57,546 bases of DNA, taken from Octopus bimaculoides (lineage: Eukaryota). The notes below the pieces were generated by a model. That model did no database searches, was not told the DNA's origin, and saw only the letters and a list, made by a program, of their open reading frames with translations. A program made the position numbers and the translations under genes. The stretch covers positions 50,876,961 to 50,934,506 of the forward strand of contig NC_068985.1 in NCBI RefSeq assembly GCF_001194135.2, given 5' to 3'. Positions 2,291-56,995 of this stretch are shown one piece after another. The first letter of the stretch is position 1; each line of letters opens with the position of its first letter.

Positions 2291-3185
2291 AGGGAAAAAC
2301 TTGCATCTTGTAAATTTTCCTAAGTCCTCTCCCCATCCTTTGGAAAAGATTTTCCCAACAAATTTCTTTATAATCGTAATGTATGCCCTTCCAAAGATAT
2401 TTCTATAAAATTTCATTGAAAAAAAACCATTTTCCTGAAAGTTATGAGGGAAAAACTCCGATTTTGTGAATTTTCCGAAGTTCTTTCCCAACAAATTTCT
2501 TTATAATCGTAATGTATNNNNNNNNNNNNNNNNNNNNNNNNNNNNNNNNNNNNNNNNNNNNNNNNNNNNNNNNNNNNNNNNNNNNNNNNNNNNNNNNNNN
2601 NNNNNNNNNNNNNNNNNNNNNNNNNNNNNNNNNNNNNNNNNNNNNNNNNNNNNNNNNNNNNNNNNNNNNNNNNNNNNNNNNNNNNNNNNNNNNNNNNNNN
2701 NNNNNNNNNNNNNNNNNNNNNNNNNNNNNNNNNNNNNNNNNNNNNNNNNNNNNNNNNNNNNNNNNNNNNNNNNNNNNNNNNNNNNNNNNNNNNNNNNNNN
2801 NNNNNNNNNNNNNNNNNNNNNNNNNNNNNNNNNNNNNNNNNNNNNNNNNNNNNNNNNNNNNNNNNNNNNNNNNNNNNNNNNNNNNNNNNNNNNNNNNNNN
2901 NNNNNNNNNNNNNNNNNNNNNNNNNNNNNNNNNNNNNNNNNNNNNNNNNNNNNNNNNNNNNNNNNNNNNNNNNNNNNNNNNNNNNNNNNNNNNNNNNNNN
3001 NNNNNNNNNNNNNNNNNNNNNNNNNNNNNNNNNNNNNNNNNNNNNNNNNNNNNNNNNNNNNNNNNNNNNNNNNNNNNNNNNNNNNNNNNNNNNNNNNNNN
3101 NNNNNNNNNNNNNNNNNNNNNNNNNNNNNNNNNNNNNNNNNNNNNNNNNNNTGAGCTCGGGTCAAACGTTTTAGTTTGACCGTTA

Positions 3186-5381
3186 TTTACCTATACTGGA
3201 AGATTACCATAAGTTGTTGTGCAGCCGGTACTATGATATTCAATCACGTGTGTGATTTATTTATAAACAGCTAAAAAAAAATTTTTTTTTAACATTTCGT
3301 AGTACGGATAAGACTAGTAAGTTATTTCCCTTGTATTTATTTACTTTTTTTACTTCCCTAAACTGGAAGATTGTGGAAGCGCAATGGCCCAGTGGTTAGG
3401 GCAGCGGACTCGCGGTTTCGCTTCCCAGACCGGGCGTTGTGAGTGTTTATTGAGCGAAAACACCTAAAGTTCCACGAGGCTCCGGCAGGGGATGGTGACG
3501 AAACCTGCTGTACTCTTTCACCACAACTTTCTCTCACTCTTGTTTCTGTTGTGCCTGTAATTCAAAGGGCCAGCCTTGTCACACTGTGTCATGCTGAATA
3601 TCCCCGAGAACTACAATAAGAGTACACGTGTCTGTGGAGTGCCCACCCACTTGCACGTCAGTTTCACGAGCAGGTTGTTCCGTTGATCGGATCAACTGGA
3701 ACCCTCAACGTCGTAAGCGACGGAGTGCCAACAACAACAAAACTGGAAGATTACCATTTTGGAAGTTATTTCGTGTTAAGGTTGTATTTGGGTAATTTCA
3801 ACCCATCAACGACGTATATTCAGTTGAAGAAAGCTACTGTTGTTTGCGATAGTAATCGAAGAGGAACAACTTCCGGGTCGTCTCTACTAAATGTCACCAC
3901 TCTGTTCTATGTCGAGCGGCCACCTTTATCCTTTCTTCCTTTCCAGTAGCACCGTGCATTCCTTACCTTTTCCCTCCCTTCTACACTATCAACTGGCAAC
4001 CAGCGAACGAACTTCTCACTGCACTGCAGTTACCGTATTTTCGGGTGTATAAGCCGCTATTTTTGTTTTACCTTCATGTTTTTTATGTTATTTTTAATGA
4101 CAATACATCTCAGTTAGAAAATAAGGCATTTTGAAACTACATATACGTCAACGATCTGTTCAGTTTGGCTCAAAAAAATCAGTGACTGAAACTGAATAGC
4201 TCCAATTTCATTACAAGACATCCATTTCCCTAAAAGTTACGAGGGGAAAAATTCGGATCGTGTGAATTTTCCGAAAGTCCTCTCCCCGCCTCCGATTCGT
4301 TCGTGAAATTTTTGTTTTCATATTCCATTAATACACATTTTTTACACCTATTACACTCGTTTTGATTTTTGTTTTGGTGACCAGTAGTTAAAGTAACATT
4401 AACCGATAGAATAACCAGGTTTTAAAAAAATGAGTCCTGGGATCGATTCATTCGACTAAAAATTCCCCAAGGCGGTGACCCAGCATGGCCACAGGCTAAT
4501 GACTGAAACAAGATAGAAGCACAATATACTGAAATGATTTTAACGAAAAAAGTGTGGTTACTCGGCTGATTAAAACTAGCAACCAAATCTTATCCTACCT
4601 TTTTTCTTTAACATTTCTAAGAAAATGTTACTTTCACTTTAATTTCCAAGAAGTGATTATATTAGATACTATGACCAGCAAAACTTTCCAAATTCAAGCA
4701 GATATTTCGTAGAAAAATAATCTATGGAGCTGCTGTTTTAGCATTTCACGCAAGATAATTCATTAACTGCCTGCTGCGTAATAGAAACTCAAGTACGTTG
4801 ACTTATTTCCCTTGTTTATATGAATTTACCTATACTGGAAGATTACCATAAGTTGTTGTGCAGCCGGTACTATGATATTCAATCACGTGTGCNNNNNNNN
4901 NNNNNNNNNNNNNNNNNNNNNNNNNNNNNNNNNNNNNNNNNNNNNNNNNNNNNNNNNNNNNNNNNNNNNNNNNNNNNNNNNNNNNNNNNNNNNNNNNNNN
5001 NNNNNNNNNNNNNNNNNNNNNNNNNNNNNNNNNNNNNNNNNNNNNNNNNNNNNNNNNNNNNNNNNNNNNNNNNNNNNNNNNNNNNNNNNNNNNNNNNNNN
5101 NNNNNNNNNNNNNNNNNNNNNNNNNNNNNNNNNNNNNNNNNNNNNNNNNNNNNNNNNNNNNNNNNNNNNNNNNNNNNNNNNNNNNNNNNNNNNNNNNNNN
5201 NNNNNNNNNNNNNNNNNNNNNNNNNNNNNNNNNNNNNNNNNNNNNNNNNNNNNNNNNNNNNNNNGCGTAATAGAAACTCAAGTACGTTGACTTATTTCCC
5301 TTGTTTATATGAATTTACCTATACTGGAAGATTACCATAAGTTGTTGTGCAGCCGGTACTATGATATTCAATCACGTGTGC
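3186..5381 (+). repeat. Three copies of a 67-bp segment upstream of the ParB-like ORF (3186-3252, 4825-4891, 5314-5380)
   Basis: tttacctatactggaagattaccataagttgttgtgcagccggtactatgatattcaatcacgtgtg is identical in all three. Copies 2 and 3 lie in a 117-bp duplication (4776-4892 = 5265-5381) flanking an N gap. Confidence 0.85.
3373..3739 (+). mobile_element. Full-length tRNA-derived SINE with (AAC)n tail and 13-bp target-site duplication
   Basis: A-box-like TGGCCCAGTGG and degenerate B-box-like GGTTTCGCTTCCC near the 5' end; caacaacaacaa tail; AAACTGGAAGATT duplicated at 3360-3372 and 3740-3752. Confidence 0.85.
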
Positions 5382-5476: not shown

Positions 5477-6224
5477 ATGTTCATCACACTGTCTCCCAAA
5501 GAGATCCGCTATACTCAAGATTCTATTTCTTCATGTTTTCAAAATGGAAACGAAATACAAGATCTTATTTCAGAAATTATCAGGGGTCAAACCACAACTC
5601 ATGAAATTCGAACAATCAGAGTTTTCGATAAAGATGGAAAATATTATAGCTTAGACAATAGGAGACTTTACGTGTTCAAAGAAGTACAACGGTTAATTAA
5701 GTCAGCCAAATTTGAAGATAAAGGTCAAATTATTATCACACGTTGATTCTGTCGAAGATAAATTCACTACAAGGAACAATGGCTTAAGTATACAAGTAAG
5801 AAAGAGTAAGACAGCAAATAGAGTACCAAAATATGCAAGTCCCAGAACAACATATGAAGCAAGTCCCAGAACTACATATGAAGCAAGTCCCAGAATTATT
5901 TATCCAGCTGGATATAATTTGTCCAGTCTAAGTAATCGTAGCGATGGAACGGATGACTGGACACTTTATGGACTGGACAGAACAACGTATGAAGCAAGTC
6001 CCAGAACAACATATGAAGCAAGTCCCAGAACTACATATGAAGCAAGTCCCAGAATTATTTATCCAGCTGGATATAATTTGTCCAGTTTAAGTAATCGTAG
6101 CGATGGAACGGATGACTGGACACTTTATGGACTGGACACTTCAAGAGCTCCAAATGTTATACGTGAAGATCCCATAAAGCCAAAACCAAAGAAATCCGAT
6201 GATTCTTGGTGTGTAATTCTTTAA
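5477..6224 (+). CDS. ParB/Sulfiredoxin-like domain protein with repeat linker and C-terminal CaaX; reading frame interrupted at about 5693-5700 (frameshifted allele, pseudogene or assembly error)
   Basis: ATG at 5477 gives MFITLSPKEIRYTQDSISSCFQNG...IRTIRVFDKDGKYYSLDNRRLYVFKEVQRL. The +1 frame continues SQPNLKIKVKLL...KFTTRNNGLSIQVR, then repeats, then KPKPKKSDDSWCVIL*. The IRYTQDSI and hydrophobic-SLDNRRL motifs resemble the ParB/Srx N-terminal box and the DG/GxRR catalytic motif (recognised from memory, no HMM run). Confidence 0.7.
5835..6138 (+). repeat. In-frame nested coding repeats: 24-nt unit (TTYEASPR) inside a 159-nt (53-codon) tandem duplication
   Basis: 5835-5979 matches 5994-6138 with one substitution (gtccagtcta vs gtccagttta). 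There are five TTYEASPR units and six SPR motifs. Confidence 0.95.
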
Positions 6225-6820: not shown

Positions 6821-7772
6821 ATATATTATTGTATAACCGGGAACTTGTTACACTTAAAGTTCTGGGAAAAACTTCCTTTTGTAAACTCCCATACTTTGTT
6901 TTTTTCTTTTCCTTTTATGGTTAATGTTTACATCTTAACTTTATGGAGTCATTCATATCGATTCATTTCAACAATCATTATAATTGATGACAACGCCGTT
7001 ACATAGCAATACTGATCATAGCAATTCAATCATTCTGCAGAATTCGGTACGTAACCTTNNNNNNNNNNAGAATTTAAGGAATGGAGAAAACGCATGTTAT
7101 AATTGTATACTTTATTCCTACATATGTTTCAAAGGATTACAACCTGTGTGATCCATAGGGATCTTTGATATTAAAATTGTAACCTTCTCATCAGGGAAAG
7201 CATGGGAATCATGTGTTCTTTGCTACATTGGTTTCTATTAACGAATTTATTCTATCAGAAGAATTTTTATTCATTAAGATAGAAGAAATGCACATAATTA
7301 TATATATATGTATAAAAGGGGCGGAGGTAAAGAATACGTACACCACCAGCTTTTGCCAGAACATAAACCCTAACACTGAGTGTAAGTATTCTTTACTTTC
7401 GCCATAAAAGGTTTTTGTTTCATTTAAACAATTTTAAAAAGTGTAAATTATAAGTTTATGGTTTAATAGACCTCTCCCACACGCGGCAAAAAAGTTTCAA
7501 TCTCTCTGCTACCAACGAAAACGATAAGCTTTCTCAATATATTATTGTATAACCGGGAACTTGTTACACTTAACATTCTTGGAAAAACATCCTTTTGTAA
7601 ACACCCATATTTTGTTGTTTTTTTTCCCTTTATGGTTAATGTTTACATCTTAACTTTATGGAGTCATTCATATCGATTCATTTCAACAATCATTATAATT
7701 GATGACAACGCCGTTACATAGCAATACTGATCATAGCAATTCAATCATTCTGCAGAATTCGGTACGTAACCT
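6821..7772 (+). repeat. About 238-bp direct duplication (6821-7058 vs 7537-7772) across a 10-N gap
   Basis: The copies share the same text. Differences cluster in the first ~85 bp and the remainder looks identical. Confidence 0.85.
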
Positions 7773-8865
7773 TTTTCATTCGTAAATTGGATAAATTTTC
7801 ATAAATGCACCCGCACGCGTTTCACAAAGGATCTTTTTTTTTTTTTTGCGTGATTTTTAAGCCTTGATTTGCATTTTCCCAATGCTCAACCGTTTCTGTA
7901 GGTGNNNNNNNNNNNNNNNNNNNNNNNNNNNNNNNNNNNNNNNNNNNNNNNNNNNNNNNNNNNNNNNNNNNNNNNNNNNNNNNNNNNNNNNNNNNNNNNN
8001 NNNNNNNNNNNNNNNNNNNNNNNNNNNNNNCACTCCATAAACGGCTCCTTTCTGCAGAAAATGGAAGATTTGACTGCTATTTCTCGCACGCGCTGCTACC
8101 ACGTAATAGCTGTCATGTCCTTTATTGCAAATAGCTGTTCAGTGGTAGCAGGACGTGCTAGAAATACCAGCCTAATCGGTTCATAACAAGGTTTCACTTT
8201 GTATCGCTTTAATTATAACTGGGGAGGGGGTGATCTGCAGTTACTGTCATTATTAAAGTGTTGCTTAAAAATGCACCTAATTTTTAAGCCTTGATTTGCA
8301 TTTTCCCAATGCTCAACCGTTTCTGTAGGTGGTCACTTTCTACATTTTATTAAAATACTGCGATATGCGCTCAAAATACAAAGGAGTTACATTTTAATTC
8401 AAAAGACTTCACCAGTTCTTGAATCTTTGAGAAAATTAACTAAAGAAAAGTGGTGCTCTTTCGTATATGAAGAGTGACTACACTTGTGGTGGGAAAGTGT
8501 ACAAGCGAATCCCCCTTTTTTTTTAATATTCTTTATAATTTAACCTTTCACAAGATCACAAGACAAATGCACTTTCCATTGTCTTTTATGAGAATTGACT
8601 GTCCATGTTTCATATACATTTCGTCAGTAATACATTTCCATAGTAGTATTAGCCATGAAAGAAAGAGTTACTTTAAAATACTGATTTGAAATCAGTTTTA
8701 TAAGATAAATAATGATAGCAAATGGGTTGAAACAAAAATGTGATCGTAACGTCATCAATTCGTTTATAGTCAGAGAAATGTTTTTTTGTTTTTTTTGTTT
8801 CGTAATCAGCTTAACCCAAAGTTAATAAGACATGTCAAGTTGAGGAAGGTGTATAATAACCTTTA

Positions 8866-9992: not shown

Positions 9993-10032
<40 letters not shown>

Positions 10033-10510
10033 CACACGTCCATTTCATATAGGTGTACATACATCTTTCACTTTCTCTTTCAATAAATTTTTAAGGATAC
10101 AACTGCTTACAAAAATAGGGATTAATGTATAATTTCTTTTTATGTTCATAATTCTTTGTTTACAATATTGAAAAAAATATATGCAACCAAAGAAAAGACA
10201 TAATCTCTCCAGAAACAAGTATAAAGCAAGGAGGATTGTAGAAAACCTAAAGCGAGAGTCTGAACAGAGAAGCGAGATGAGATTTTCTCAAGATCAGCAA
10301 ATGCATGTTGCAGCACTTAATGCTGGATCATTAAATCAATGTTTTAATGATACAATAACTCTCAGAAACAGACAAGAGACTGGACATCTAATAATAGTTT
10401 GAAAGACCTCTGGCTGAATGCACTATCATGACCAGATACAGGAATCGATGGAGATAGATGCTGTATGCATCAAAGGTCCTTTACCCTCAGAAATGAGAAA
10501 GGAAATAGGT
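8866..10510 (+). mobile_element. Probable non-autonomous Helitron: 5' end plus decayed N-terminal ORF fragment
   Basis: A|TCTTCATATATAAATCTGTCTGTCTGTTTGT start, typical of animal Helitron 5' ends. ORF 10181-10402 (MQPKKRHNLSRNKYKARR...ESEQRSEMR) resembles basic RepHel N-termini. No 3' CTAG terminus identified. Confidence 0.45.
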
Positions 10511-11062
10511 AAAGCAATGCAATGTGTTTGTGCTTGTGCACGTGTATATGTAAATGCTTGTTTATATATTTACGTATGTGTGTGAGTTTGCGTATATATA
10601 TGTGTGTGTGTTTATGTATTTGTGTGTGTATAATGTGTTAAGAGATAGTAGGGATTGATGTCAATGGTTAAGTTGATGTTAAAAGCCTAGGGGAGGGGAT
10701 TATATTGGCAATGGTATTGTCACCAGGGTTGTTCATGAAAATTTTGAAGTGATAGGTGGAGCAACATTTTCTCCCCAAGCCACACTCCTTCCCTAAAACC
10801 ACACCCCACATCCATCCAAAAGATTCTTTTGTGTTTTAAATGTCTGTTCCCTTTTTACTTCACTTTTATTGCGGCAACTGTTGATGTCTCAAAGGGCAGA
10901 TGAAGGCAGGTGTGAAGTGATGTGTGTGTATGTGTATTCCCTGTTGCATCCTGTTATAATTAGTTATTTTGTGATAACTTGGCATGAATTGGAAGATAGG
11001 TGTGTGTGTGTCTGTGTGTTGTAAAGCAGTATTTGCTTTCTTTCTATTCAAATATACAAATA

Positions 11063-11101
<39 letters not shown>

Positions 11102-12174
11102 CCATGTGGATCGTGATTGAAAAAAGAAAAGGGAAAAGTAATATGTGATAGAGAAAATTCTTAGCGTATTTATAATGTAACATGATGTTTTGTAATTTTG
11201 TGCCCTTTTGGTTCATAAAAACATTGTTAAAAAACAATTATAAAGAAATGTGTATTGCTCACCACCAGCTTTTTTCGTTGTTTTTCTCACAATCTGCTGC
11301 ATGGATTTATAGGTGTACCTTTTTTTTTTTATTCAAACGGTTCTCACATTGTGTATACACACACATACACGTTTATGTTTCAAATGACTCATAATGTTTA
11401 TGAGTCACTGAAACACCTTTGTAAATGTAGACTTTGTTTCTTAACTTATTTAAAAATCCTTGAATGGTCATCTTCGACATGATGTCTGTTATACTATGGC
11501 TGTAGCCAGTTTACTTCGAAGGGAATATTCTAGTTAATAGTTTTATCAAAAGACGCAACATTTTACGTGTGTCATGTTGGAAATCCCAAACTGATAAACA
11601 ACAGATCAGTCCATAATGATATTCCCTTGATCCTCTATCGCTGTCCCAGTTGTGAATTTATTGAGAACATGTATGTGTGTGTATGTAATGTGTTTATAAC
11701 TATGTATTTATATAAGCATATGTGAATGTATGGCTGTGTATCTCTATCCATAACCTTTATAAACTACAAAAGAAAAAAAAAACCCCAAAAGACAAACCAT
11801 TCAACCCACCGGTCTATCGAAAAGTCTAGGTTGAGAAGTTTGGCTGTTTTTATATTCATATACATGCTATTATTTACTCACACTGACATGCTCTATCCTC
11901 CCTTCACTCATATCCTCAGTCAATGTATGAATTAGTGAATGAAGGAATTCAAAATCAGCTCAGCCTTTTTCTTGTTGAGCTCCAGTTGGAAGCATTCACT
12001 TATATGATACTTTTGAGGCACATAATGTTGTTGTTTAACTCCAAATCAAATTTTTATGAAGTCAGCTTATAATGAAAGACTTTTCATAGGGACCCTCTAG
12101 TTTTTGTACATATACGTGTTTTTTCTTTATTCTAAGACTGCTGTTTTAAACAGGTTGAACCACTGCACAGTGGT

Positions 12175-12960: not shown

Positions 12961-13974
12961 AAAAAACATACACACACACACACACATATAGAGAGAGAGA
13001 GAGCAATTGTTGCCATCATTTAATGCCCAGCTCCCATGTACATATGAAAAAAAAATTATATATGTAAACCTACAAGAAAATTCCATAATATTGGCCCCAG
13101 TAGATTACATACATATGTATAGGAGAAGCATCCATGACAAAGTAGACACTAGAGTATGACATATTCCTCAAAGAATGTCATACTAAAGAGCTCTCTCTGA
13201 CTTATAATATTTCCTGTCATTAACCAACCACTTTATAGAATGTGCCGAGTGTATTTTGTTGTGGAACCAGTAGAATAGAGGTTGTCTTGTCCTATTTAAG
13301 AATATAGCAACTTCTCTATTCTATAATGTCTCTGTGCATTTAAGACATTTTGAGCTTTCAAGGAAAGAGGGGGGGGGCAGACTTGAATAAAATTATACTA
13401 CTTTTAAAAATAATAAAACAAATATGATGTATCAGAGAACGTGAAATAATGCATAAGTTTCAAACAGAAGATAAATAGATCAATTGTGGATGAAAAGTAG
13501 GATAAAAAGAGATGCCTTCAGAAAGAAGATATAAGAAAACATAGCCCCTCACATAAAAAACAAGAAAGAAAGATGGATGGCCATGGCTGAAAAGCTTTCA
13601 TTACCATTCTGCTTAATCAGGTTTGACCTTGGACTAAATAACAACTTTGTTTCCAGTGAACAAGAAATCCTCTACCTTAGAAATTCTATACCTTCCTCTG
13701 TCAGTTATATATCATTCACGTGTTCGTGACGCTAGATCATGGGTTTGATTCCTAGACTTAGTGGTGCATTATGTTCTCAAGCAAAACACTTCATTTCACA
13801 TTGCTCCAGTCCCCACTTTTGATTAACATGGAAGTGTGGCCTGCTCACCTAGCCAGCTGGGTAGCATTATTTGAAAGCTAAAATGATGCAAAATGCATTG
13901 TGACCAATGATGTGTAACGACATCTGATAGCTTGGTCGGTCACGTGATCACATATGTCTGAATGTGTGTGTGTG

Positions 13975-14150
13975 TGTGTTTCATCATGTAACCTCGTGGG
14001 CATCGGTACCATTTTCCTCTTTCTCCGTTCTTCCATTCTCCGAACTTTCCATCTTTCCGACGAAGGGCTACGCCCGAAACGTCATACACTCTCTCTTTCC
14101 TTTCCTGAGCGTCCAATAATACTATCCATATCACGTCCTCACTTTGTTGT
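13975..14150 (+). mobile_element. Penelope-like element terminal remnant with a minimal hammerhead-like core
   Basis: CCGACGA-AGGGC-TAC-GCCC-GAAACGTC at 14057-14083 in a pyrimidine-rich, CpG-retaining island. Confidence 0.55.
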
Positions 14151-14179
14151 TTTTTTGTTTTTTTGTTATTGTTTTTTTG

Positions 14180-14182
<3 letters not shown>

Positions 14183-14242
<60 letters not shown>
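14183..14242. repeat. (TA)30 microsatellite
   Basis: Uninterrupted TA run. Confidence 0.95.
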
Positions 14243-14243
<1 letters not shown>

Positions 14244-16689
14244 CAGGAAGAGAGAGACAGATATACTAGCATATAGTTAATCATATTACGTCTACGTATA
14301 CATACATACAAAAAAGAAGAATCAGAAAGAGATTTTAAATGGCTGGTATGAATATGAATAGCACTGACACAGAATTAAGAAGCCTGAAATGTTGTACAGG
14401 AGGCAGCTATACAAGCTACACCTGGTTATACCCTCTATTCTACTTTGACTTCATCTTTCTAGTGATGGAGATTTATTAGAAAACGAACTAAGAAAAGGGA
14501 GGGAGTAAATGAGGAAGGAAGAGAAAAATGAAATGTTTAATACAGCAGACTAACACAAATAATATCTGAACATGAAATATAAAAGAGGAGGGGACAAATA
14601 GTTTCGTGAAGGAACATGGGAAGGTGAGGGCAGTAAGGAGAGAGGTGAGAGTGAAATACATGTTGGGAAAATTAAGAGAAAGTGATGACAAAGCATAAAG
14701 AGAGAAAAGGTGAAAGAAAGAGAAACTGCAAAAGCTAAAAGTGAGAAATCATTAAAGAGAAATGAAAGTGAGAGGGCTTATCCTGAGGATAACTAGATTT
14801 AAAAAGTAAGGAAAAATGCTGAAGGTGAGCAAGAATAAAATTGTAGAAACACTGTAGTTATTACTACATGCACACACATTAGTTTGGTTGTTTTACATTC
14901 GTTTTTCTACGTTGGCAAAGATTGAACTTGTACTTCTTTGAGGCAGTATTTTTACAGCTGAATGCTCTTCCTGTCACCAATCCTTACTGCTTTTACAAGT
15001 AATTTTTTTTTTTATCCCACTGCTTCAAGATTGCATAACAAAGAGACATAATGTTCACAAAAAATGTAAACACATTTATTTTTGTTGTGCTGATTTCATA
15101 AAAGAAGAAAAAAGACATTTTCATGCACATACACACATGTACACATTTATACAATAAATTTTCATAAAGTTCCCATCTACCAATTCACTCACAGACCATT
15201 AGTCAGCAATAGCAGAAGACACTTGTCCAAAGTACTATACAGTGGGACTTAATCTAAGTGGTTGTAAAGCATACTACTTAACAACACAGCCACGTCTATA
15301 TGCAAGCACGCACACACACACACACATACATACATAGTAAATAAAAGCATACACCAGGACAAAGGGACAGACAGTAATAATCTAAGCCAGAACTTAGCCA
15401 CACTGTCAAGTAAACACAGGTTTTTCTCAATGTGGCTACAAGAGGAGATTGATCAATCAAGTTTCAGCATTTATTAACATCATATCTATTAATTATTCTT
15501 GTCTACAGAGAGAACAGCAGCTTCTAGCTATTCACAGTGTATGTAAATTTGGACAGGACTAAACTCATCTGCCTATTTTGCCTAATAGTACAAACATTGA
15601 CAATATGAATTAATAAGTAACTATATAAGGCCAGGAATCTTATAGGCCAGTAAGCCAATGATATCAACCCAAATACCTGACTGGTATTTTTCTTTTAACT
15701 CTGATGGAATGCCCTTTTGTCACCAACTCTCACATGTTTCAAAGCCAGACATTCTTTCAGAGAATACTGAAAATGAATGACATTGCTTATATGACAGTGA
15801 CCATGCAATGTCAAAACAAGGAGATGCAAATATATACACACACTCACATACATACATATACGTGTTTGTGTATATATACAGTGCTCCAGCATGGCTGCAG
15901 TCATATGACTGAAACAAATAAAAGAATAAATACACAGACACATGCAATGATAGGCCTCTTTCGATTTCTGCTCACAAGACTTTGATTAGCCCAAGGAGTC
16001 ACACACGGAGGATTGAATATGAAATTACGTACATGGCTGAGAAACAAACTTAATTATATATACAGGCCCACACCTAAAATATAATATTAGCAGTTCCAAG
16101 GTTTATGTTCTGTGCTGGTATGGGTTCATATATACATAAATTCTGTTATGGGAGTGTGGTGCACATGTATGTACTTACAGGTGTAACAGGGTGCACCAAG
16201 TTTCATATCTTTACATCTACTTAGTCACGCAATAAATAACAAATGATGAATTATGTACTTGAGTGAGTTACCAAGCCCCTTGCAACCAGTTGATGTCAAC
16301 TGTTTAACAACTTGAATACGCAAGAGCAATAGTAAAGAAAACCTAGCAGTTATTCTTGACAAAGTTTGCATTGATATCATGTTCAAAAAATATTGTCAAT
16401 CGTAAACAAATAATGAAGAGTTTAAAAAAATAAAAACTAGTTAATCACAAGTGGAACATCTTTGACCATGAGTCTGTTAAACCAGGACAGACATAGGGTT
16501 ACACAATAACAATTATCTACATCTTAGGACAAATATTTTCTGTTAACAAACTTAATACAAGAAATAAAAGATGACAGGATCAGATAAAACAACAGCAATA
16601 TCTTATTGGTACTTACCTTACCAGTATTAAATGGGTAAAAATCAAAATGATCTCCAGTGTGAAACAGAAAATAGTTAGGAATTAATGCT

Positions 16690-17370
16690 GATGCACACAG
16701 AGGCAGATTGTATGATGTCTGTGTGTGAACAGCCATGCTACATGGCAATGAAACATGGGTTGTGACCACTAATGACATGCATAGGCTTGAAAAAAATGAA
16801 GCTAGTATGCTTCGCTGAATGTGCAATGTTAGTGTGATGTATGAGAGAGTGTAAGCATCCTGAGAGAAAAGTTGAGAATAAAAGGCATCAGATGTGGTGT
16901 GCAAGAGACAACTGCACTAGTATGGTCATGTAACGCATATGGATGAGGACAGCAGTGCAAAGAAGTGCCGATCTCTAACTGGGGAGGGAACTTGTGGAAG
17001 AGGTAGAGCCAGGAAGACATGGGACAAGGTGGTGAAGCATGATCTTCAAACATTGGGCAAACACGGAGGCGATGACAAGTGACCAAAACTTTTGATGATA
17101 TGCTGTGCCTGAGAAGATTTGTCAAGCCAGGTGAAATCAGTCATGGCCAATACTGGTGTCACATAACTGGCACAGAAAAGAACCCTTTGCCAGTGACAGG
17201 TAAAAAGCACCCATTACACTTTTGAGGTGGTTGACATTAGGAAGGGCATGCAGCCATAGAAACCATGCCAAACCAGACTTGAACTTGGTGCAGCTCTCCA
17301 ACTGACCAATTCCACTCAAACCATCTAACCCATGCCAGTATGGAAACGAGATGCTAAATGATGATAATTA
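16690..17370 (+). mobile_element. RTE LINE 3' fragment (C-terminal ORF remnant plus 3' UTR with GAT tail)
   Basis: Decayed ...LREKLRIKGIRCGVQERQLH*YGHV... text, followed by the aaagcaccc...aggaagggcat...aacccatgc...gatgat tail shared with other copies. Confidence 0.75.
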
Positions 17371-18019
17371 TTGAGCCCATCATCTAGATACCACTTATAA
17401 GGATAATTCCCAACATAGACACAAAGTCATAAATTTGTAAGGAAAAAATACAGTTAATTGAACTAATTAATGATTATCTTTTTACACACTGAAATAACAA
17501 ATGTCAAAAAATCAACTACGACAGTAATTAAACTCAAGACAAAGAAATTAATAGCTAAATAGTGATTGATAATGATAAAAATAATGATACTCTCTTTCAC
17601 ATTTTATTACTGATTATTAACAAGACTTGAATAAGACAGAAATAATAATTTTTAACATAGGTGCAAAGCTGCAAAATTTGGAAGAATATACAATCAAATC
17701 AATAACAGTATTTACTAGTATTGTAGTTTACTGACCAGGGAAAACAAAGTTGACTTTGACAAAATTGAGCTCAGAATATAAAGCCCTGTAGCTAAAGACC
17801 ACCTCAGTATACAAATATTACGAATAAAAAACCACCTAGGCATACAAATATTATGAATAAATAGAATTAAGATAACAATGTTTCTTACAAGCTCATCTGT
17901 GATGGTTTTCCAGGCAAGAATATGTTAGATTATGACATAGCTTGACTTAGTGACATGCGAAAGAAACAGCTCACAATCTTAACTTGCTAAAAGATTTATT
18001 TTGGTTTTAACATGATCAT

Positions 18020-18235
18020 CACATTTCATCATTATCATCATCTCTTAACATCTGCCTTCCATGCTGACATGGGTAGAATGGTTTGACAGGAGCCAGGCAG
18101 GCAGAAGCCTGCACCAGACTTCTGCAACTGTTTTGGCAGGATTTTGACAGGTGGATGCCCTTCCTAAAACCAACCACTCAGCAGAGTGGACTTAGTGCTT
18201 TTTTCATGGCACAAACACAGGCGATTTTTTGGCAC
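18020..18235 (-). mobile_element. RTE 3' UTR fragment (diverged)
   Basis: catcattatcatcatc...ttccatgctgacatggg...ggatgcccttcctaaaaccaaccactc is the reverse complement of the family tail. Confidence 0.7.
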
Positions 18236-20879: not shown

Positions 20880-21152
20880 TCCTCCACAGCAGACGTGTTA
20901 AGGCTGCTCCACCTGGTGAAGAGGATTAGCCTGCAAGAGTCTTGTGCCAGTGCCATGTAAAAACCTTTCATACAGGTGCTACATTAAAAGTACCCTGCAC
21001 ACACTGCAAAGTGGTTGGCATTAGGAAGGGCAATTAGCCATCTAAACCAAACCAAATCAGACTGGAACCTGGTGCAGTTCTCTGGCTTGCCAGCCATGGT
21101 CATACTGTCAAACCCATGCTAGCATGAAAAACAGCTATTAAAGGATGATGAC
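20880..21152 (+). mobile_element. RTE 3' UTR fragment (diverged)
   Basis: gtggttggcattaggaagggc...aacccatgctagcatg...ggatgatg. Confidence 0.7.
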
Positions 21153-29344: not shown

Positions 29345-29740
29345 AAAATCGTTGCCAGAGCAGCTGTCTGGCTCCCGTGCCAGTGGCACGTAAATAGCAC
29401 CATTTGAGCGTGATCGTTACCAACTTGTGCCGGTGGCACGTGTAAAGACATTCGTGTAAGGTTGTTGCCAGTGCCGCTGGACTGGCTCCTGTGCAGGTTA
29501 CACGTAAAAGACACCATTTCGAGCATGGCCATTGCCTGACTGGCCTTTGTGCCAGTGGCATGTAAAAGCACCCACTACACTCTCGGAGTAGTTGGCATTA
29601 GGAAGGGCATCCAGCTGTAGAAACTCTGCCAAATCAGATTGGAGTCTGGTGTAGCCACCTGGTTCACCAGTCCTCAGTCAAACCGTCCAACCCATGCTAG
29701 CATGAAAAGCGGATGTTAAACGATGATGATGATGATGATG
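29345..29740 (+). mobile_element. Young RTE 3' UTR copy with tandem gtggcacgtaaa units and (GAT)n tail
   Basis: CpG-rich, closely matches the copies at 30598-30788 and 42283-42470. Confidence 0.8.
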
Positions 29741-30179: not shown

Positions 30180-30461
<282 letters not shown>

Positions 30462-30597: not shown

Positions 30598-30788
30598 ATC
30601 ATCATCATCATCATCATCATCATCGTTTAACGTCCGCTTTCCATGCTAGCATGGGTTGGACGATTTGACTGAGGACTGGTGAAACCAGATGGCTACACCA
30701 GGCTCCAATCTGATTTGGCAGAGTTTCTACAGCTGGATGCCCTTCCTAATGCCAACCACTCAGAGAGTGTAGTGGGTGCTTTTACGTG
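30598..30788 (-). mobile_element. Young RTE 3' UTR copy, inverted relative to 29561-29740
   Basis: (ATC)n followed by gtttaacgtccgctttccatgctagcatgggttggacg...gtagtgggtgcttttacgt. Confidence 0.85.
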
Positions 30789-30985
30789 TCATCCACACGA
30801 AGGCCAGTCAGGCGGTACTGACACAGTCAACAGAAACTATTCCATGACAATATGGAATAATTTCTATTGGGAATACTATGAGGATATGGAATAATTCTAT
30901 TAGGAATACATAAATTCATATACAAAATTACCAACAAACCATGGGACCAGAGTCACTGAGATTATTCTATTATTCATACTGATAT

Positions 30986-32810: not shown

Positions 32811-32886
32811 CTTTTTCAGGAAGTTGAACTAAAAATAGTCTTTTGTGTTCTTTGGGTTTTGTTATGTGAGCTGGTACATAAGGATA
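32811..32886 (-). CDS. NUDT21: CFIm25 coding exon (76 nt)
   Basis: tttttag|TAT CCT TAT GTA...GAA AAA G|gtaagt encodes YPYVPAHITKPKEHKRLFLVQLPEK(A). Its phase matches the next exon. Confidence 0.97.
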
Positions 32887-33859: not shown

Positions 33860-34024
<165 letters not shown>

Positions 34025-42160: not shown

Positions 42161-43593
42161 CAGGGTGTTCCAAAAAAATGTATACTCAAATTCAATGATT
42201 ATAAAATCAGCATTTATTAAAATAAATTTCATTTGCAAAATTTTGACTGAATTTACAGACAGAATTTAAATTTTATGAACGGTGGCACGTAAAAGCACCC
42301 ACTACATTCTCGGAGTGGTTGGCGTTAGGAAGGGCATCCAGCTGTAGAAACTCTGCCAAATCAGATTGGAGCCTGGTGTAGCCATCTGATTCACCAGTCC
42401 TCAGTCAAATCGTCCAACCCATGCTAGCATGGAAGGCGGACGTTAAACGACGATGATGATGATGATGATGATTTGTTTTCAAACTGATGAGTATTCTGGT
42501 TCAGGCACTGCTGATAATGCAAAGCAATGGAATCACAAACATCAAGAAACATTTCATCCTGTATGTGTTCACACTCTCTTTCAATGGCTGCCTTCAATTC
42601 TTGACTGTCACCAGCTTTGTACTGTAAACTTTATCTTTTAAGTATCCCCATAAAAACGTCTAGTGGTGTGCAATCCAGTGAACATACAGGGTATTTTAAC
42701 TGAACCTCTTCACCAATCTACCTATTTGGCAAGGTAAGCCCTTTCATTATTCTGGTAGAGTGGGAGTGCTCCATCTTGTTGGAAATAAAACTCCACGTCT
42801 TCGTGTCCTCATGAATGTGTAGCATGGCAGATTGTTACAGCATGTTCAACTAAATGGGAACAGTCACAGCACTGCCAAAAAAGAATGGTCCAATTAATTC
42901 TTTTGATGGTAAGCCACATCATATTGTAACTCCTGGTAAATTCGCATGATATTCATCTGTAATATGCAGCTTCCAAGGTCTCCAGTAAATGCAACTGTGA
43001 TATTTAATTGAATCATTTAATTTAACTGTAATTCATTACTCCATACAATCTTTGTTGGAAAGCGTGCATCTTATACATCTTGCCAAGTACCACATGCAAA
43101 AGTTCACTCTTCGGTCTACATCAGCTTCATTGAGAGCATGGACTATTCTTAGAATATAACTTTTCCAATGATAGCACTTCAAAATGCGACAGATGCTTAA
43201 TTTTGAAATTCCTATCTCAGAATCCGCTTGTCGTACAGATTTTCTTGAACTATAGCAATATGTTTCTAGTACCTTTTCTTGTTTTGTGAGAATTGTCAAT
43301 GTAGGTGCACTTCTGGAAAGTTTTCTGCAGATGTTCTGAACAGTTCTATCTGCTTCAAACTTATCTCTAATTCAAATGATATTAAATTGCAGTGGATTTG
43401 TTTGAAACTTCCCACCAAATTGTCTTTGCGCTCCAACTATATTTTCAAATTTCTAGTAGCATTTTAGGATAATTTTTCTTTGTTCAAAGCTTAATCAGGC
43501 TTTCTTCATTATTTGTAAAGAGTTAAATCTAAAAAGAAATGAAAATTAAGTTATCAGCTGTTAAGTGTGTATACATTTTTTGGGGATCCCCTG
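42161..43593 (-). mobile_element. Tc1/mariner-superfamily transposon fossil with both 25-bp TIRs; RTE tail inserted at about 42283-42470
   Basis: TIR cagggtgttccaaaaaaatgtatac vs reverse complement caggggatccccaaaaaatgtatac (21/25). Minus-strand remnants [25 protein letters not shown]...[20 protein letters not shown] (42770-42784) and SLDCTPLDVF/WGY. Confidence 0.85.
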
Positions 43594-55232: not shown

Positions 55233-55438
55233 TAGCATATTTGTCATACTACCCATGAATATTCTAAAACTATGATTTAAAGGATTGCATTGAATTGTTG
55301 TAAATGTTTTTCAGAGACGACCTACAGTGATGCATATACCACCACTTCAACTGCAAGCAATTTGAAGATCAATACTTAAAGAATACCTGTGTATACCTTA
55401 CAGCTTGATGGCAATGTTTAGAATAAATTTGTTCTTAC

Positions 55439-55502
55439 TTCAGTTAGCAGTCTTTTCAGTCCATCAACTTGGTCTTCATTTGGATTTAATTCTCCACCTG
55501 GC
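55439..55502 (-). CDS. NUDT21: CFIm25 coding exon (64 nt, start of the Nudix box)
   Basis: tacctgcag|G CCA GGT GGA GAA TTA...ACT GAA|gtaaga encodes PGGELNPNEDQVDGLKRLLTE. It joins 33926-34015 in phase 0. Confidence 0.96.
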
Positions 55503-56995
55503 CTGCAGGTAAAAATGTAAGCTGATGATAATTATGTCTTTAAAGCACAAGAGTTAATTATTGTTCATACATGGCATACATAATATTTATCATTAACACT
55601 GCATCAATAAAACTGATATGATGACAAACTATGATGACCATATCAACATATCTGATGCAGAAATGGGAAAAAGACATTAAGTTAAAGTATATCTTGCAAG
55701 AAACATCTCTTGACATGATACTTTCTTTCTTTGAAATTTCCATTACTTTCAGAAATCAGAATCCTTTGAAAGATCAAACCACATTGAGTCAATATACTTA
55801 TTGTCATGTCACAATGTAATTCATCCTCAACTGTAATCTAAAAAGTATGTTTGTTATACAATGATACAGGTGACTAATGCACAAAGGGATTCTACATACA
55901 AGGGGAAACACTTCAAACAGATTCTTATGGGAAATATTAATGGACCTTAATTGGTCTGCTTTATTCCTTGCTCAAAGAAGTCATAGAATATCTGTACTAA
56001 ATTGTCCACACTAACAAGGCAAGTAAAACAAACACAAAAATAAAACAAAACGGTTCACATTTAGAGAACTCAAAAACAATCATCTTACCACAAGCAAATA
56101 TAAAAATCCATCAATAAGACACATGAATACATAAAATATAGCATTAAAAATAAGAGAAAAAGAAAATATCTAAAATAAGTCTGCCAAACAGCATATAAGA
56201 CTGAGCATGCATATATATATATATATATATACATCATCATCATCGCCGTCGTTTAATGTTCGCTTTCCATGGATACACACAAAGTGTACTTCTTCAGTTT
56301 CCATCTACTAGATCTACTCACAAGGCTTTGGTTGATACAGGGCTATCGTAGAAGACACCTGACCAAAGTGCTGCACAATCATAGGAAATTTGCCTTGATA
56401 AACTCCGTCCAACCCATGCAATCATGGAAAAGTGGACGTTAGAATGATGATGATGATGATGATGATGATGATATACAACATAGTTGTGTTGTTAAGAAAT
56501 TCACTTTCCAACTATGTGGTTTCAGGTTCAGTCCAACCGTGTGGCACTTTGTATCTTCTACTATGGCACCAATTAAATCCTAGTGAGTGGAATTGGTAGA
56601 TAGAAACTGAAAGATGTTCACCATGTGTGTTTGTGTGTCTATGTGAGTAAGTTCGTATTTCCCTCATTTTCAAAGATATAAACAAAAAATTCAGACAGTG
56701 TCAAGTGGTGTTGTTTGCTTACACCAAGAAAGCATGCCTGAGTTTCTTAACAAGTTATGCAAACATTCTAAATAAATAGTTAACTCAGTGTCATTTGTTT
56801 CTAGTTCTCTACATAAACACATCCAGGATTGTTGTTACATAGAAGGTTATTACATAGCTTGGAAACAGGAGGGAGTTGGCATCAAGAAGAGCACCCATGA
56901 AAAGAAAACTCAGCCCTAACATATTCACAAAGGACCCATACAAGGATGGAAAAGTAAGCATTTAAATGATGATGTTCCTGATAACTACATATATA

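Follow-up and report, generated by a model that had tools for sequence, protein, structure and literature searches.

Among proteins of the ParB/sulfiredoxin (Srx) fold, the Tox-ParBL1 domain was named by Zhang, de Souza, Anantharaman, Iyer and Aravind (2012, Biol Direct 7:18; PMC3482391), with NGK_2271 of N. gonorrhoeae as its type member and with the definition "predicted ParB fold; [ST], [NT][RT][RT]" (mostly N-R-R). Metazoan, plant, fungal, and protist members were already listed in that work, and their occurrence in eukaryotes was read as acquisition from polymorphic toxins, independent of sulfiredoxin (PMC3482391). The family is large, covering many bacterial phyla and scattered eukaryotes, and has no Pfam or NCBIfam model. 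The gene analysed here encodes a protein with such a domain and is located at 5477-6224 (plus strand) of a 57,546-nt stretch of the Octopus bimaculoides genome (NCBI RefSeq assembly GCF_001194135.2, contig NC_068985.1, positions 50,876,961 to 50,934,506, forward strand), which as a whole is referred to as the window. On balance, it is probable that this gene, as a member of a small multigene family of octopods, encodes a fast-evolving, membrane-tethered enzyme that uses nucleoside triphosphates (NTPs) and that was domesticated from a bacterial toxin.

The octopus domain shares the conserved N-terminal Ser, the N-R-R motif, and the predicted ParB fold with the bacterial Tox-ParBL1 domains. In contrast to these, it is placed N-terminally in a short, cytosolic animal protein that also carries a repeat linker and a prenylation signal, and its gene has neither a delivery module nor an adjacent immunity gene. 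A second ParB-fold toxin, the CdiA warhead ToxB (Kaljevic et al., 2026), binds and hydrolyses ATP, and the arginine of its GxxR motif is essential; ToxB is lethal to bacteria and also to plant cells, lacks a DNA-binding domain, and was found by a PF02195-based survey, with the motif GNHR (bioRxiv 10.64898/2026.05.05.722872). Because of this survey and this motif, ToxB corresponds to classical Tox-ParB. Both ToxB and the octopus domain are ParB-fold, toxin-type domains with a phosphate-binding arginine motif (predicted in the octopus) at the equivalent position, whereas the octopus domain carries DNRR (without the Gly) and an extra Ser motif, and gave no match to PF02195, the canonical ParB N-terminal domain, even at E<=10.

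Sulfiredoxin and the archaeal free serine kinase SerK are ParB-fold enzymes of a single domain that transfer phosphoryl groups with ATP/ADP (Srx as an ATP-dependent phosphotransferase, SerK as a kinase), and they were the best or near-best structural matches of the octopus domain (6ky4, 2rii, 1yzs, and 5x0b). The strand-strand-helix register of Srx was also recovered by hhalign, with R63 of the octopus protein on the Srx Arg. However, the octopus domain lacks the Cys of FGGCHR, has no sequence-level similarity to these enzymes, and conserves other residues, and its lipid anchor is new. The CTP switches ParB, Noc, and KorB share the N-terminal fold and the position of the arginine motif, but the octopus protein lacks a helix-turn-helix (HTH), a dimerisation domain, a ParA-binding motif, and any match to PF02195, and is not a DNA-segregation protein. 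With regard to the C-terminus, GBP1, GBP2, and GBP5 are prenyl-anchored, nucleotide-hydrolysing immune effectors, and Rho/Rap GTPases are also CaaX-prenylated. These proteins resemble the octopus protein in having a C-terminal CaaL box after a polybasic stretch or an extra Cys; on the other hand, their fold is unrelated to the octopus domain, and prenylation of the octopus protein is predicted.

Reading frame, frameshift and public gene models

The gene is an intronless open reading frame (ORF) with its ATG at 5477, and is interrupted by a single +1 frameshift. Its parts are as follows.

5477-5692, plus strand: coding sequence (CDS) part A, start codon and codons 1-72 (MFITLSPKEIRYTQDSI ... 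DNRRLYVFKEVQR), in frame 1
5693-5700, plus strand: 4-nt tandem duplication of TTAA (TTAATTAA) that causes the +1 frameshift, from nucleotide alignment to O. sinensis
5697-6224, plus strand: CDS part B, codons 73-247 with the stop codon TAA, read in the +1 frame with respect to part A
5744-5746, plus strand: premature TGA of frame 1 as assembled, giving an 89-aa product
5724-5757, plus strand: 34-nt GT..AG "intron" of the model A0A0L8FR60, which restores the frame and deletes 12 codons

As assembled, frame 1 is translated as MFITLSPKEIRYTQDSI...DNRRLYVFKEVQRL up to the TGA, and the 89-aa product stops short of strand 5, the C-terminal motif, and the CaaX tail. In the +1 frame, no stop occurs between 5694 and the TAA at 6222-6224, and the C-terminal end is ...KPKPKKSDDSWCVIL (SWCVIL). 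The extra copy of TTAA is either 5693-5696 or 5697-5700, and both O. sinensis copies of the gene have a single TTAA. Deletion of 4 nt yields a 744-nt ORF of 247 aa, which confirms the one-step frame repair proposed in an initial annotation of the sequence (~247-248 aa). The repaired strand LSQPNLKIKVKLL resembles QPNLRIRVKLI in O. sinensis and EPNLTIKVKL in the paralogue P0008, and the repaired stretch ...QRLSQPNLKIKVKLLSHVDSVEDKFTT... fits the strand that is conserved among paralogues. The motifs IRYTQDSI, DGKYYSLDNRRLYVFK, and KFTTRNNGLSIQVR were all found in the ORF, and the repaired protein consists of an N-terminal domain of ~110 aa, a repeat-rich linker, and a C-terminal CVIL, so that the motifs and the architecture (domain, low-complexity linker, CaaX) quoted in the annotation are all present. 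A chance ORF is ruled out because the homology E-values range from 1e-18 to 1e-58. The duplicated TTAA is also the piggyBac target site; transposon remnants were not seen, and replication slippage is a simpler explanation of the duplication.

Public databases already contain the gene as "uncharacterized" (UniProt A0A0L8FR60, P0168, 237 aa). Residues 1-72 of this entry are identical to CDS part A, which is also collinear with both O. sinensis copies, and the entry as a whole is the exact translation of 5477-5723 joined to 5758-6224; the published model therefore spans the frameshift with the 34-nt "intron". This intron swaps the conserved strand 5, which is nearly invariant in the family (V83 in alignment numbering), for out-of-frame residues, and is thus an annotation artefact. 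In O. sinensis, the orthologous locus (L002, CM016863.1) matches the window collinearly for >5 kb at 81-88% nucleotide identity and contains two tandem, intact, single-exon copies (10001-10648 and 13529-14272) of 215 aa ending in SWCVIL and 247 aa ending in RCCVIL, which bears out the view that no coding intron is needed. The RefSeq protein XP_036358910.1 (LOC115211823) is chimeric, with the 5' part of copy 1 fused to the 3' part of copy 2. Two public models are thus faulty, one by a 34-nt pseudo-intron and the other by fusion of tandem genes. New in the present analysis are the exact lesion, the two faulty models, the recurrent CaaX/tail-anchor architecture, and the fast evolution in octopods.

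The Nei-Gojobori ratio of nonsynonymous to synonymous substitution rates (dN/dS) of the domain between O. bimaculoides and O. sinensis was 0.77-0.94, with 0.46 for codons 1-73 and 1.1-1.5 for codons 74-110. The whole-domain values would be expected of a decaying gene as well, and the present copy is frameshifted as assembled. It is possible, if rather doubtful, that the 4-nt duplication is real and fixed, leaving only the 89-aa stub and no function in O. bimaculoides: the lesion is a clean tandem duplication, unlike a homopolymer-type error, a second record with an intact O. bimaculoides allele was not found, and the published model needed a pseudo-intron. However, the 175 downstream codons are open (a chance of ~1e-6 at 34% GC, calculated from base composition), the catalytic-type motifs and the CaaX box are all intact, both O. 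sinensis copies are intact, and the scaffold is a poor draft with exact duplicates flanking its gaps. Any inactivation must be very recent, because the motifs and the CaaX box are intact. That ORFs are intact and motifs conserved speaks against simple decay of the family, and the present copy may be either a null allele, very young or polymorphic, or the product of an assembly error. When the domains of both O. sinensis copies were compared, 15 changes were nonsynonymous and 1 was synonymous (binomial p ~0.12, not significant alone); positive selection was considered and was not established from these changes.

The window has 34% GC and 11 N runs, and a tblastn search with the repaired protein found only one copy of the gene in it. 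A 372-N gap just 5' of the gene is bordered by exact 117-nt duplicates (4776-4892 and 5265-5381), whose 68-nt core recurs at 3184-3252, 3' of another gap; these look like unresolved contig overlaps or collapsed tandem copies. The copy number in O. bimaculoides is uncertain because such exact duplicates flank gaps, and a second, hidden copy is possible. Downstream of the gene, beside a 10-N gap, a direct repeat (6821-7058 and 7537-7773; spacing ~715 bp) is 91-97% identical, and the O. sinensis locus also holds this segment twice (L002 ~11210-11635 and 16793-17208).

Fold, conserved motifs and bacterial toxin relatives

The N-terminal domain and its conserved motifs (residue numbers of the repaired protein) are as follows.

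5477-5810, plus strand: Tox-ParBL1-type ParB/Srx-fold domain, residues 1-110 of the repaired protein (profile search, AlphaFold2, Foldseek)
5516-5524, plus strand: Q14-D15-S16 of IRYTQDSI, with the N-terminal Ser that defines Tox-ParBL1 (family alignments; PMC3482391)
5654-5665, plus strand: D60-N61-R62-R63, predicted phosphate-binding motif at the start of helix 2 (alignments, AlphaFold2, hhalign)
5760-5801, plus strand: KFTTRNNGLSIQVR (K94-R107), conserved C-terminal domain motif KFTT..G.SI.VR (family alignments)

Residues 1-119 were modelled with AlphaFold2 from an alignment of 62 sequences, and the model had a predicted local distance difference test score (pLDDT) of 92 and a predicted TM score (pTM) of 0.84, with the order strand, strand, helix, strand, strand, helix (from N61), strand. 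In a Foldseek search of this model against the PDB, ranks 1-36 were all ParB/Srx-fold proteins, including Arabidopsis and human sulfiredoxin, Atu1540, Noc, Pfu-392566/serine kinase SerK, pNOB8 ParB, KorB, and the ParB proteins of Myxococcus, Bacillus, and Caulobacter, and the named top matches among viral models (BFVD) were almost all ParB/Srx proteins as well. The uniformity of these matches supports a ParB/Srx fold for the modelled domain despite marginal scores (given below), in agreement with the initial annotation. Searches of Pfam, NCBIfam, and PDB sequences with the protein and with the family profile gave nothing meaningful; the link to the fold thus comes from comparing structures and from the HHpred analysis in the literature (PMC3482391).

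Q14 is nearly invariant, D15 and S16 are invariant in close relatives, and position 16 is S/T among relatives. N61 is invariant in both alignments (A3 and A4), R62 is invariant in A3 and at least 90% conserved in A4, and R63 is at least 90% conserved in both; in KFTTRNNGLSIQVR, the T, T, G, and R columns are at least 90% conserved. Alignment numbering is one above protein numbering, as the query carried one extra Leu there. The proposal that DNRR is the equivalent of the ParB arginine motif held up, as N61-R62-R63 is supported as the counterpart of ParB GERR and Srx GCHR by the hhalign registers and by the published HHpred result (PMC3482391). As the initial annotation had stated, the protein is not a sulfiredoxin, because its motif (LDNRR) has no catalytic Cys and no sequence-level match to Srx was obtained with phmmer or hmmsearch against PDB sequences.

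A word-indexed homology search returned 3 matches and missed the identical UniProt entry, and an exhaustive profile search was used instead. This search recovered 3,684 cluster representatives at E<=1e-3, with 1,411 of these at E<=1e-10 and matches reaching an E-value of 1e-51. Two architectures were found among the relatives, in which the domain forms either the last ~100 residues of longer proteins or the N-terminus of short eukaryotic proteins, and several of the longer proteins have RHS repeats, an Rhs core, or a pre-toxin HINT (PT-HINT) just upstream of the domain. The eukaryotic members include octopods (Octopus bimaculoides, O. sinensis, O. vulgaris, and Argonauta), bivalves (Mercenaria, Ruditapes, Tegillarca, and Mya), tunicates (Styela, Ciona, and Clavelina), one dinoflagellate, and one haptophyte.

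The same toxin-tip pattern was found in 68 loci from bacterial genomes, which were collected with a narrow bacterial alignment and with a pattern ([YF][ST]LDNRRLY) that biases which bacteria appear; they span Clostridia, Paenibacillus, Streptomyces, Pseudomonas, Pectobacterium, Snodgrassella (a member of the Neisseriaceae), Xenorhabdus, Bacteroidota, and Parachlamydiales. In the 10 of these loci that were inspected in detail, the domain is the C-terminus of the protein and a small ORF begins within a few bases, which would be the expected arrangement of a toxin-immunity pair. In five cases, the domain directly follows Rhs DPxGL (L046, L054, and L056) or HINT VHN (L003, also P0009). Two of the five downstream small ORFs tested encode DUF7660 (L009 and L038), and comparison of these ORFs with SUKH and Imm44 gave no match. 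The tie to bacterial ParB-like toxin tips is thus stronger than the initial annotation had guessed, given the Rhs/HINT tips and the small downstream ORFs. By its ParB/Srx fold, N-terminal Ser, N-R-R motif, and toxin-tip homology, the octopus domain fits the published definition of Tox-ParBL1, and the animal members provide an example of a eukaryote keeping a bacterial toxin warhead.

A recurrent ORF of ~120-130 aa (...PLE..I.I..DD....R....PYQA.RVTT.DC...) was also observed directly downstream of bacterial Tox-ParBL1 tips, and it is likely a new immunity family that has no Pfam model. It was found at the following positions.

L001, 582-938: recurrent ~120-130-aa downstream ORF
L003, from 2834: the same
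L013, from 2785: the same
L014, from 2813: the same

With regard to the chemistry of the domain, Zhang et al. argued that nuclease domains predominate among polymorphic toxin tips, that the metal-dependent phosphoryl chemistry of ParB domains could cleave phosphodiesters, and that the ParB-type toxin tips may be nucleases (PMC3482391). The domain could accordingly be a DNase or RNase rather than an NTP-using hydrolase or transferase, and 2hwj (Atu1540) is among the best structural matches. This is an unlikely alternative, as the nuclease label of ParB has a disputed basis according to the same paper (PMC3482391), the one studied ParB-fold toxin is an ATPase for which no nuclease activity was reported, and a prenyl anchor would hold the enzyme away from nuclear DNA. 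The family of 2hwj is annotated as "ParB-like nuclease".

Predicted membrane anchor and proposed mechanism

The C-terminal part of the repaired protein contains two features.

5802-6209, plus strand: Ser/Thr/Pro/Tyr-rich low-complexity linker (sequence, repeat analysis)
6210-6224, plus strand: CaaX box C244-V-I-L247 and TAA, a predicted geranylgeranylation signal (CVIL at 6210-6221)

An in-frame tandem duplication of 159 bp (5835-6138, 99% identity), built of 24-bp ASPRTTYE units, lies within the linker, and the repeat number varies between O. bimaculoides and both O. sinensis copies. Tandem duplication and the changes in repeat number point to rapid turnover. CVIL is kept in both O. sinensis copies although their linkers are hardly alignable, and it is preceded in the octopus protein by a polybasic KPKPKK (6177-6194). 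The paralogue LOC118763415 and its counterparts in O. vulgaris and O. bimaculoides end in CCVIL or CCCVIL (SCCVIL is also listed), with extra Cys residues ahead of the CaaX box. A polybasic stretch or an extra Cys is the usual second membrane signal of CaaX proteins. Outside octopods, a Styela protein ends in CTIL (CKCTIL among the tails listed), two transcript-like contigs end in CSCTIL and CGCIIM, and a Clavelina protein and P0101 have a hydrophobic tail-anchor helix at the C-terminus. A signal peptide is not possible, because the folded domain starts at residue 1-5. On a yeast reporter, human geranylgeranyltransferase I (GGTase-I) completely geranylgeranylates CVIL and CTIL, and near-completely CIIM (PMC11152559). 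From these tails, the octopus protein is presumably prenylated and located at membranes in vivo. The idea of a membrane-tethered animal family was supported: tethering is indicated by the CaaX boxes of octopods and tunicates and by C-terminal transmembrane helices in other members. The family had, however, already been named, with metazoan members, as Tox-ParBL1. No description of a lipid-anchored ParB-fold protein, or of a CaaX/tail-anchor architecture of Tox-ParBL1, was found in the searchable literature.

In bivalves and tunicates, 2-3 tandem ParBL1 domains per polypeptide were also observed (P0005, P0007, P0011, P0043, P0048, P0107, and P0139). In Styela, a separate Cys-rich W-C-x-C-T-(I)L motif comes after every tandem domain, suggesting that the whole domain-plus-CaaX unit was duplicated.

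A mechanism can be proposed in which the ancestral product was a 247-aa cytosolic protein composed of the Tox-ParBL1 domain, a disordered linker of variable length, and the polybasic stretch with CVIL. The domain would be a diverged form of the ParB/Srx fold, acquired by eukaryotes from the "warheads" at the C-termini of bacterial polymorphic toxins. GGTase-I would geranylgeranylate Cys244 and thereby anchor the protein at the cytosolic face of a membrane, with the linker as a flexible spacer between anchor and domain. The domain would bind an NTP, whose phosphates may be held by N61-R62-R63 at the N-terminus of helix 2, as by GxxR in ParB, Srx, and ToxB, and the NTP would then be hydrolysed, or a phosphoryl or nucleotidyl group moved onto a membrane-proximal substrate, with possible contributions of Ser16 and Gln14 to catalysis. 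Binding of NTP and catalysis are proposed by analogy to ParB-fold enzymes of a single domain that have been studied by experiment, namely Srx, SerK, and ToxB. The recurrent lipid and tail anchors provide a concrete, testable idea of the site of action, and the short intronless octopus genes, together with the intact O. sinensis copies, offer an easy route to the first biochemistry of the family, bacterial toxins included.

Several observations weigh against this mechanism and the assignments on which it is built. The Foldseek scores against the PDB are marginal (E 2e-3 to ~0.6; TM 0.33-0.59). The alignment of LDN-RR on FGGCHR of human Srx by hhalign is weak (P = 5e-4, probability 31%), and that of DNRR on GERR of B. 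subtilis Spo0J has a probability of <1% and is not significant; the comparison with the single Spo0J sequence was used for the motif register only, and the Srx and Spo0J sequences were verified against PDB chains. The Gly of GxxR is replaced by D/N in the octopus motif, and nucleotide binding could therefore differ or be lost. Several octopod paralogues (P0016, P0045, and P0061) and most bivalve and Ciona members have no CaaX box, so that anchoring is a feature of a subset of the family. Finally, the only paper found to use the name Tox-ParBL1 is computational (PMC3482391), and neither experimental work on Tox-ParBL1 nor biochemical data for any Tox-ParBL1 domain were found in the literature.

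Canonical ParB-fold proteins are CTP-dependent switches, and the octopus protein might likewise be a non-catalytic, nucleotide-gated switch or scaffold like ParB, Noc, and KorB that dimerises or swaps partners at a membrane upon NTP binding. Noc is membrane-associated and is among the structural matches, and the 2-3 tandem domains of P0005, P0007, and P0011 could mimic dimers. This is nevertheless quite improbable, since a toxin warhead of ~100 aa with its own immunity gene is almost certainly catalytic, and the octopus protein has no HTH or dimerisation domain.

For the membrane-tethered enzyme, a conflict or immune role is suggested by tandem duplication, repeat turnover, and a dN/dS near 1. 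More specifically, the toxin warhead may have become, in octopods and tunicates, a geranylgeranyl- or tail-anchored, NTP-consuming effector at host or pathogen-containing membranes that acts in innate immunity or in another genetic conflict, with a hypervariable loop (codons ~86-96) and the variable spacer engaged in an arms race. This extension is speculative and rather improbable in its full form; if true, the prenylated GBP effectors would have in this protein a counterpart with a ParB fold.

Origin and genomic neighbourhood

In a neighbour-joining (NJ) tree of 167 domains, read as unrooted and without support values, the eukaryotic N-terminal-type sequences formed a group separate from the bacterial tips, and the bacterial origin therefore looks old. 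The initial annotation had taken the intronless CDS as a sign of retroposition or horizontal origin. A bacterial origin stands, but it looks old and eukaryote-wide, and not like a recent transfer or retroposition into the octopus.

Bacterial contamination, recent horizontal transfer into the octopus, or cargo of a transposon would fit the intronless CDS, the 46-48% identity of the domain to a bacterial stand-alone toxin cassette (P0001), and the location of the frameshift at TTAA. These origins are hardly tenable, because the flanks are collinear with the O. sinensis chromosome, the gene is antisense near the exons of NUDT21 in both species, the GC content of 34% resembles that of the host, the CaaX tail, a eukaryotic feature, is conserved, and paralogues occur in Octopus spp., Argonauta, bivalves, and tunicates. 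Furthermore, the eukaryotic members are apart from the bacterial tips in the NJ tree, and no transposase-like ORFs were found near the gene. All three were rejected on the collinear flanks, the NJ tree, the NUDT21 neighbourhood, and the lack of such ORFs. With ParB/Srx matches recovered, no transposon remnants seen at the locus, and intact orthologues in O. sinensis, the central proposal of the initial annotation was retained.

The neighbouring gene in the window is an orthologue of NUDT21/CPSF5 (CFIm25, NUDIX_2), with four exons that are 69-88% identical to human residues 103-225.

30333-30461, minus strand: NUDT21/CPSF5 exon
32812-32886, minus strand: NUDT21/CPSF5 exon
33926-34018, minus strand: NUDT21/CPSF5 exon
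55436-55513, minus strand: NUDT21/CPSF5 exon

The ParBL1 gene is antisense to NUDT21/CPSF5 and lies ~24 kb past its last coding exon in the window. The neighbourhood is the same in O. sinensis, where the ParBL1 gene is inside the annotated range of the NUDIX_2 gene. Copies of an interspersed repeat, 71-91% identical and probably a short interspersed nuclear element (SINE)-like element, are present in both orientations at 17188-17371, 18029-18201, 20987-21151, 29348-29740, 30606-30823, and 42280-42467, as well as at L002 1244-1655 in O. sinensis. The window is also rich in microsatellites of the (TA)n/(CA)n type.

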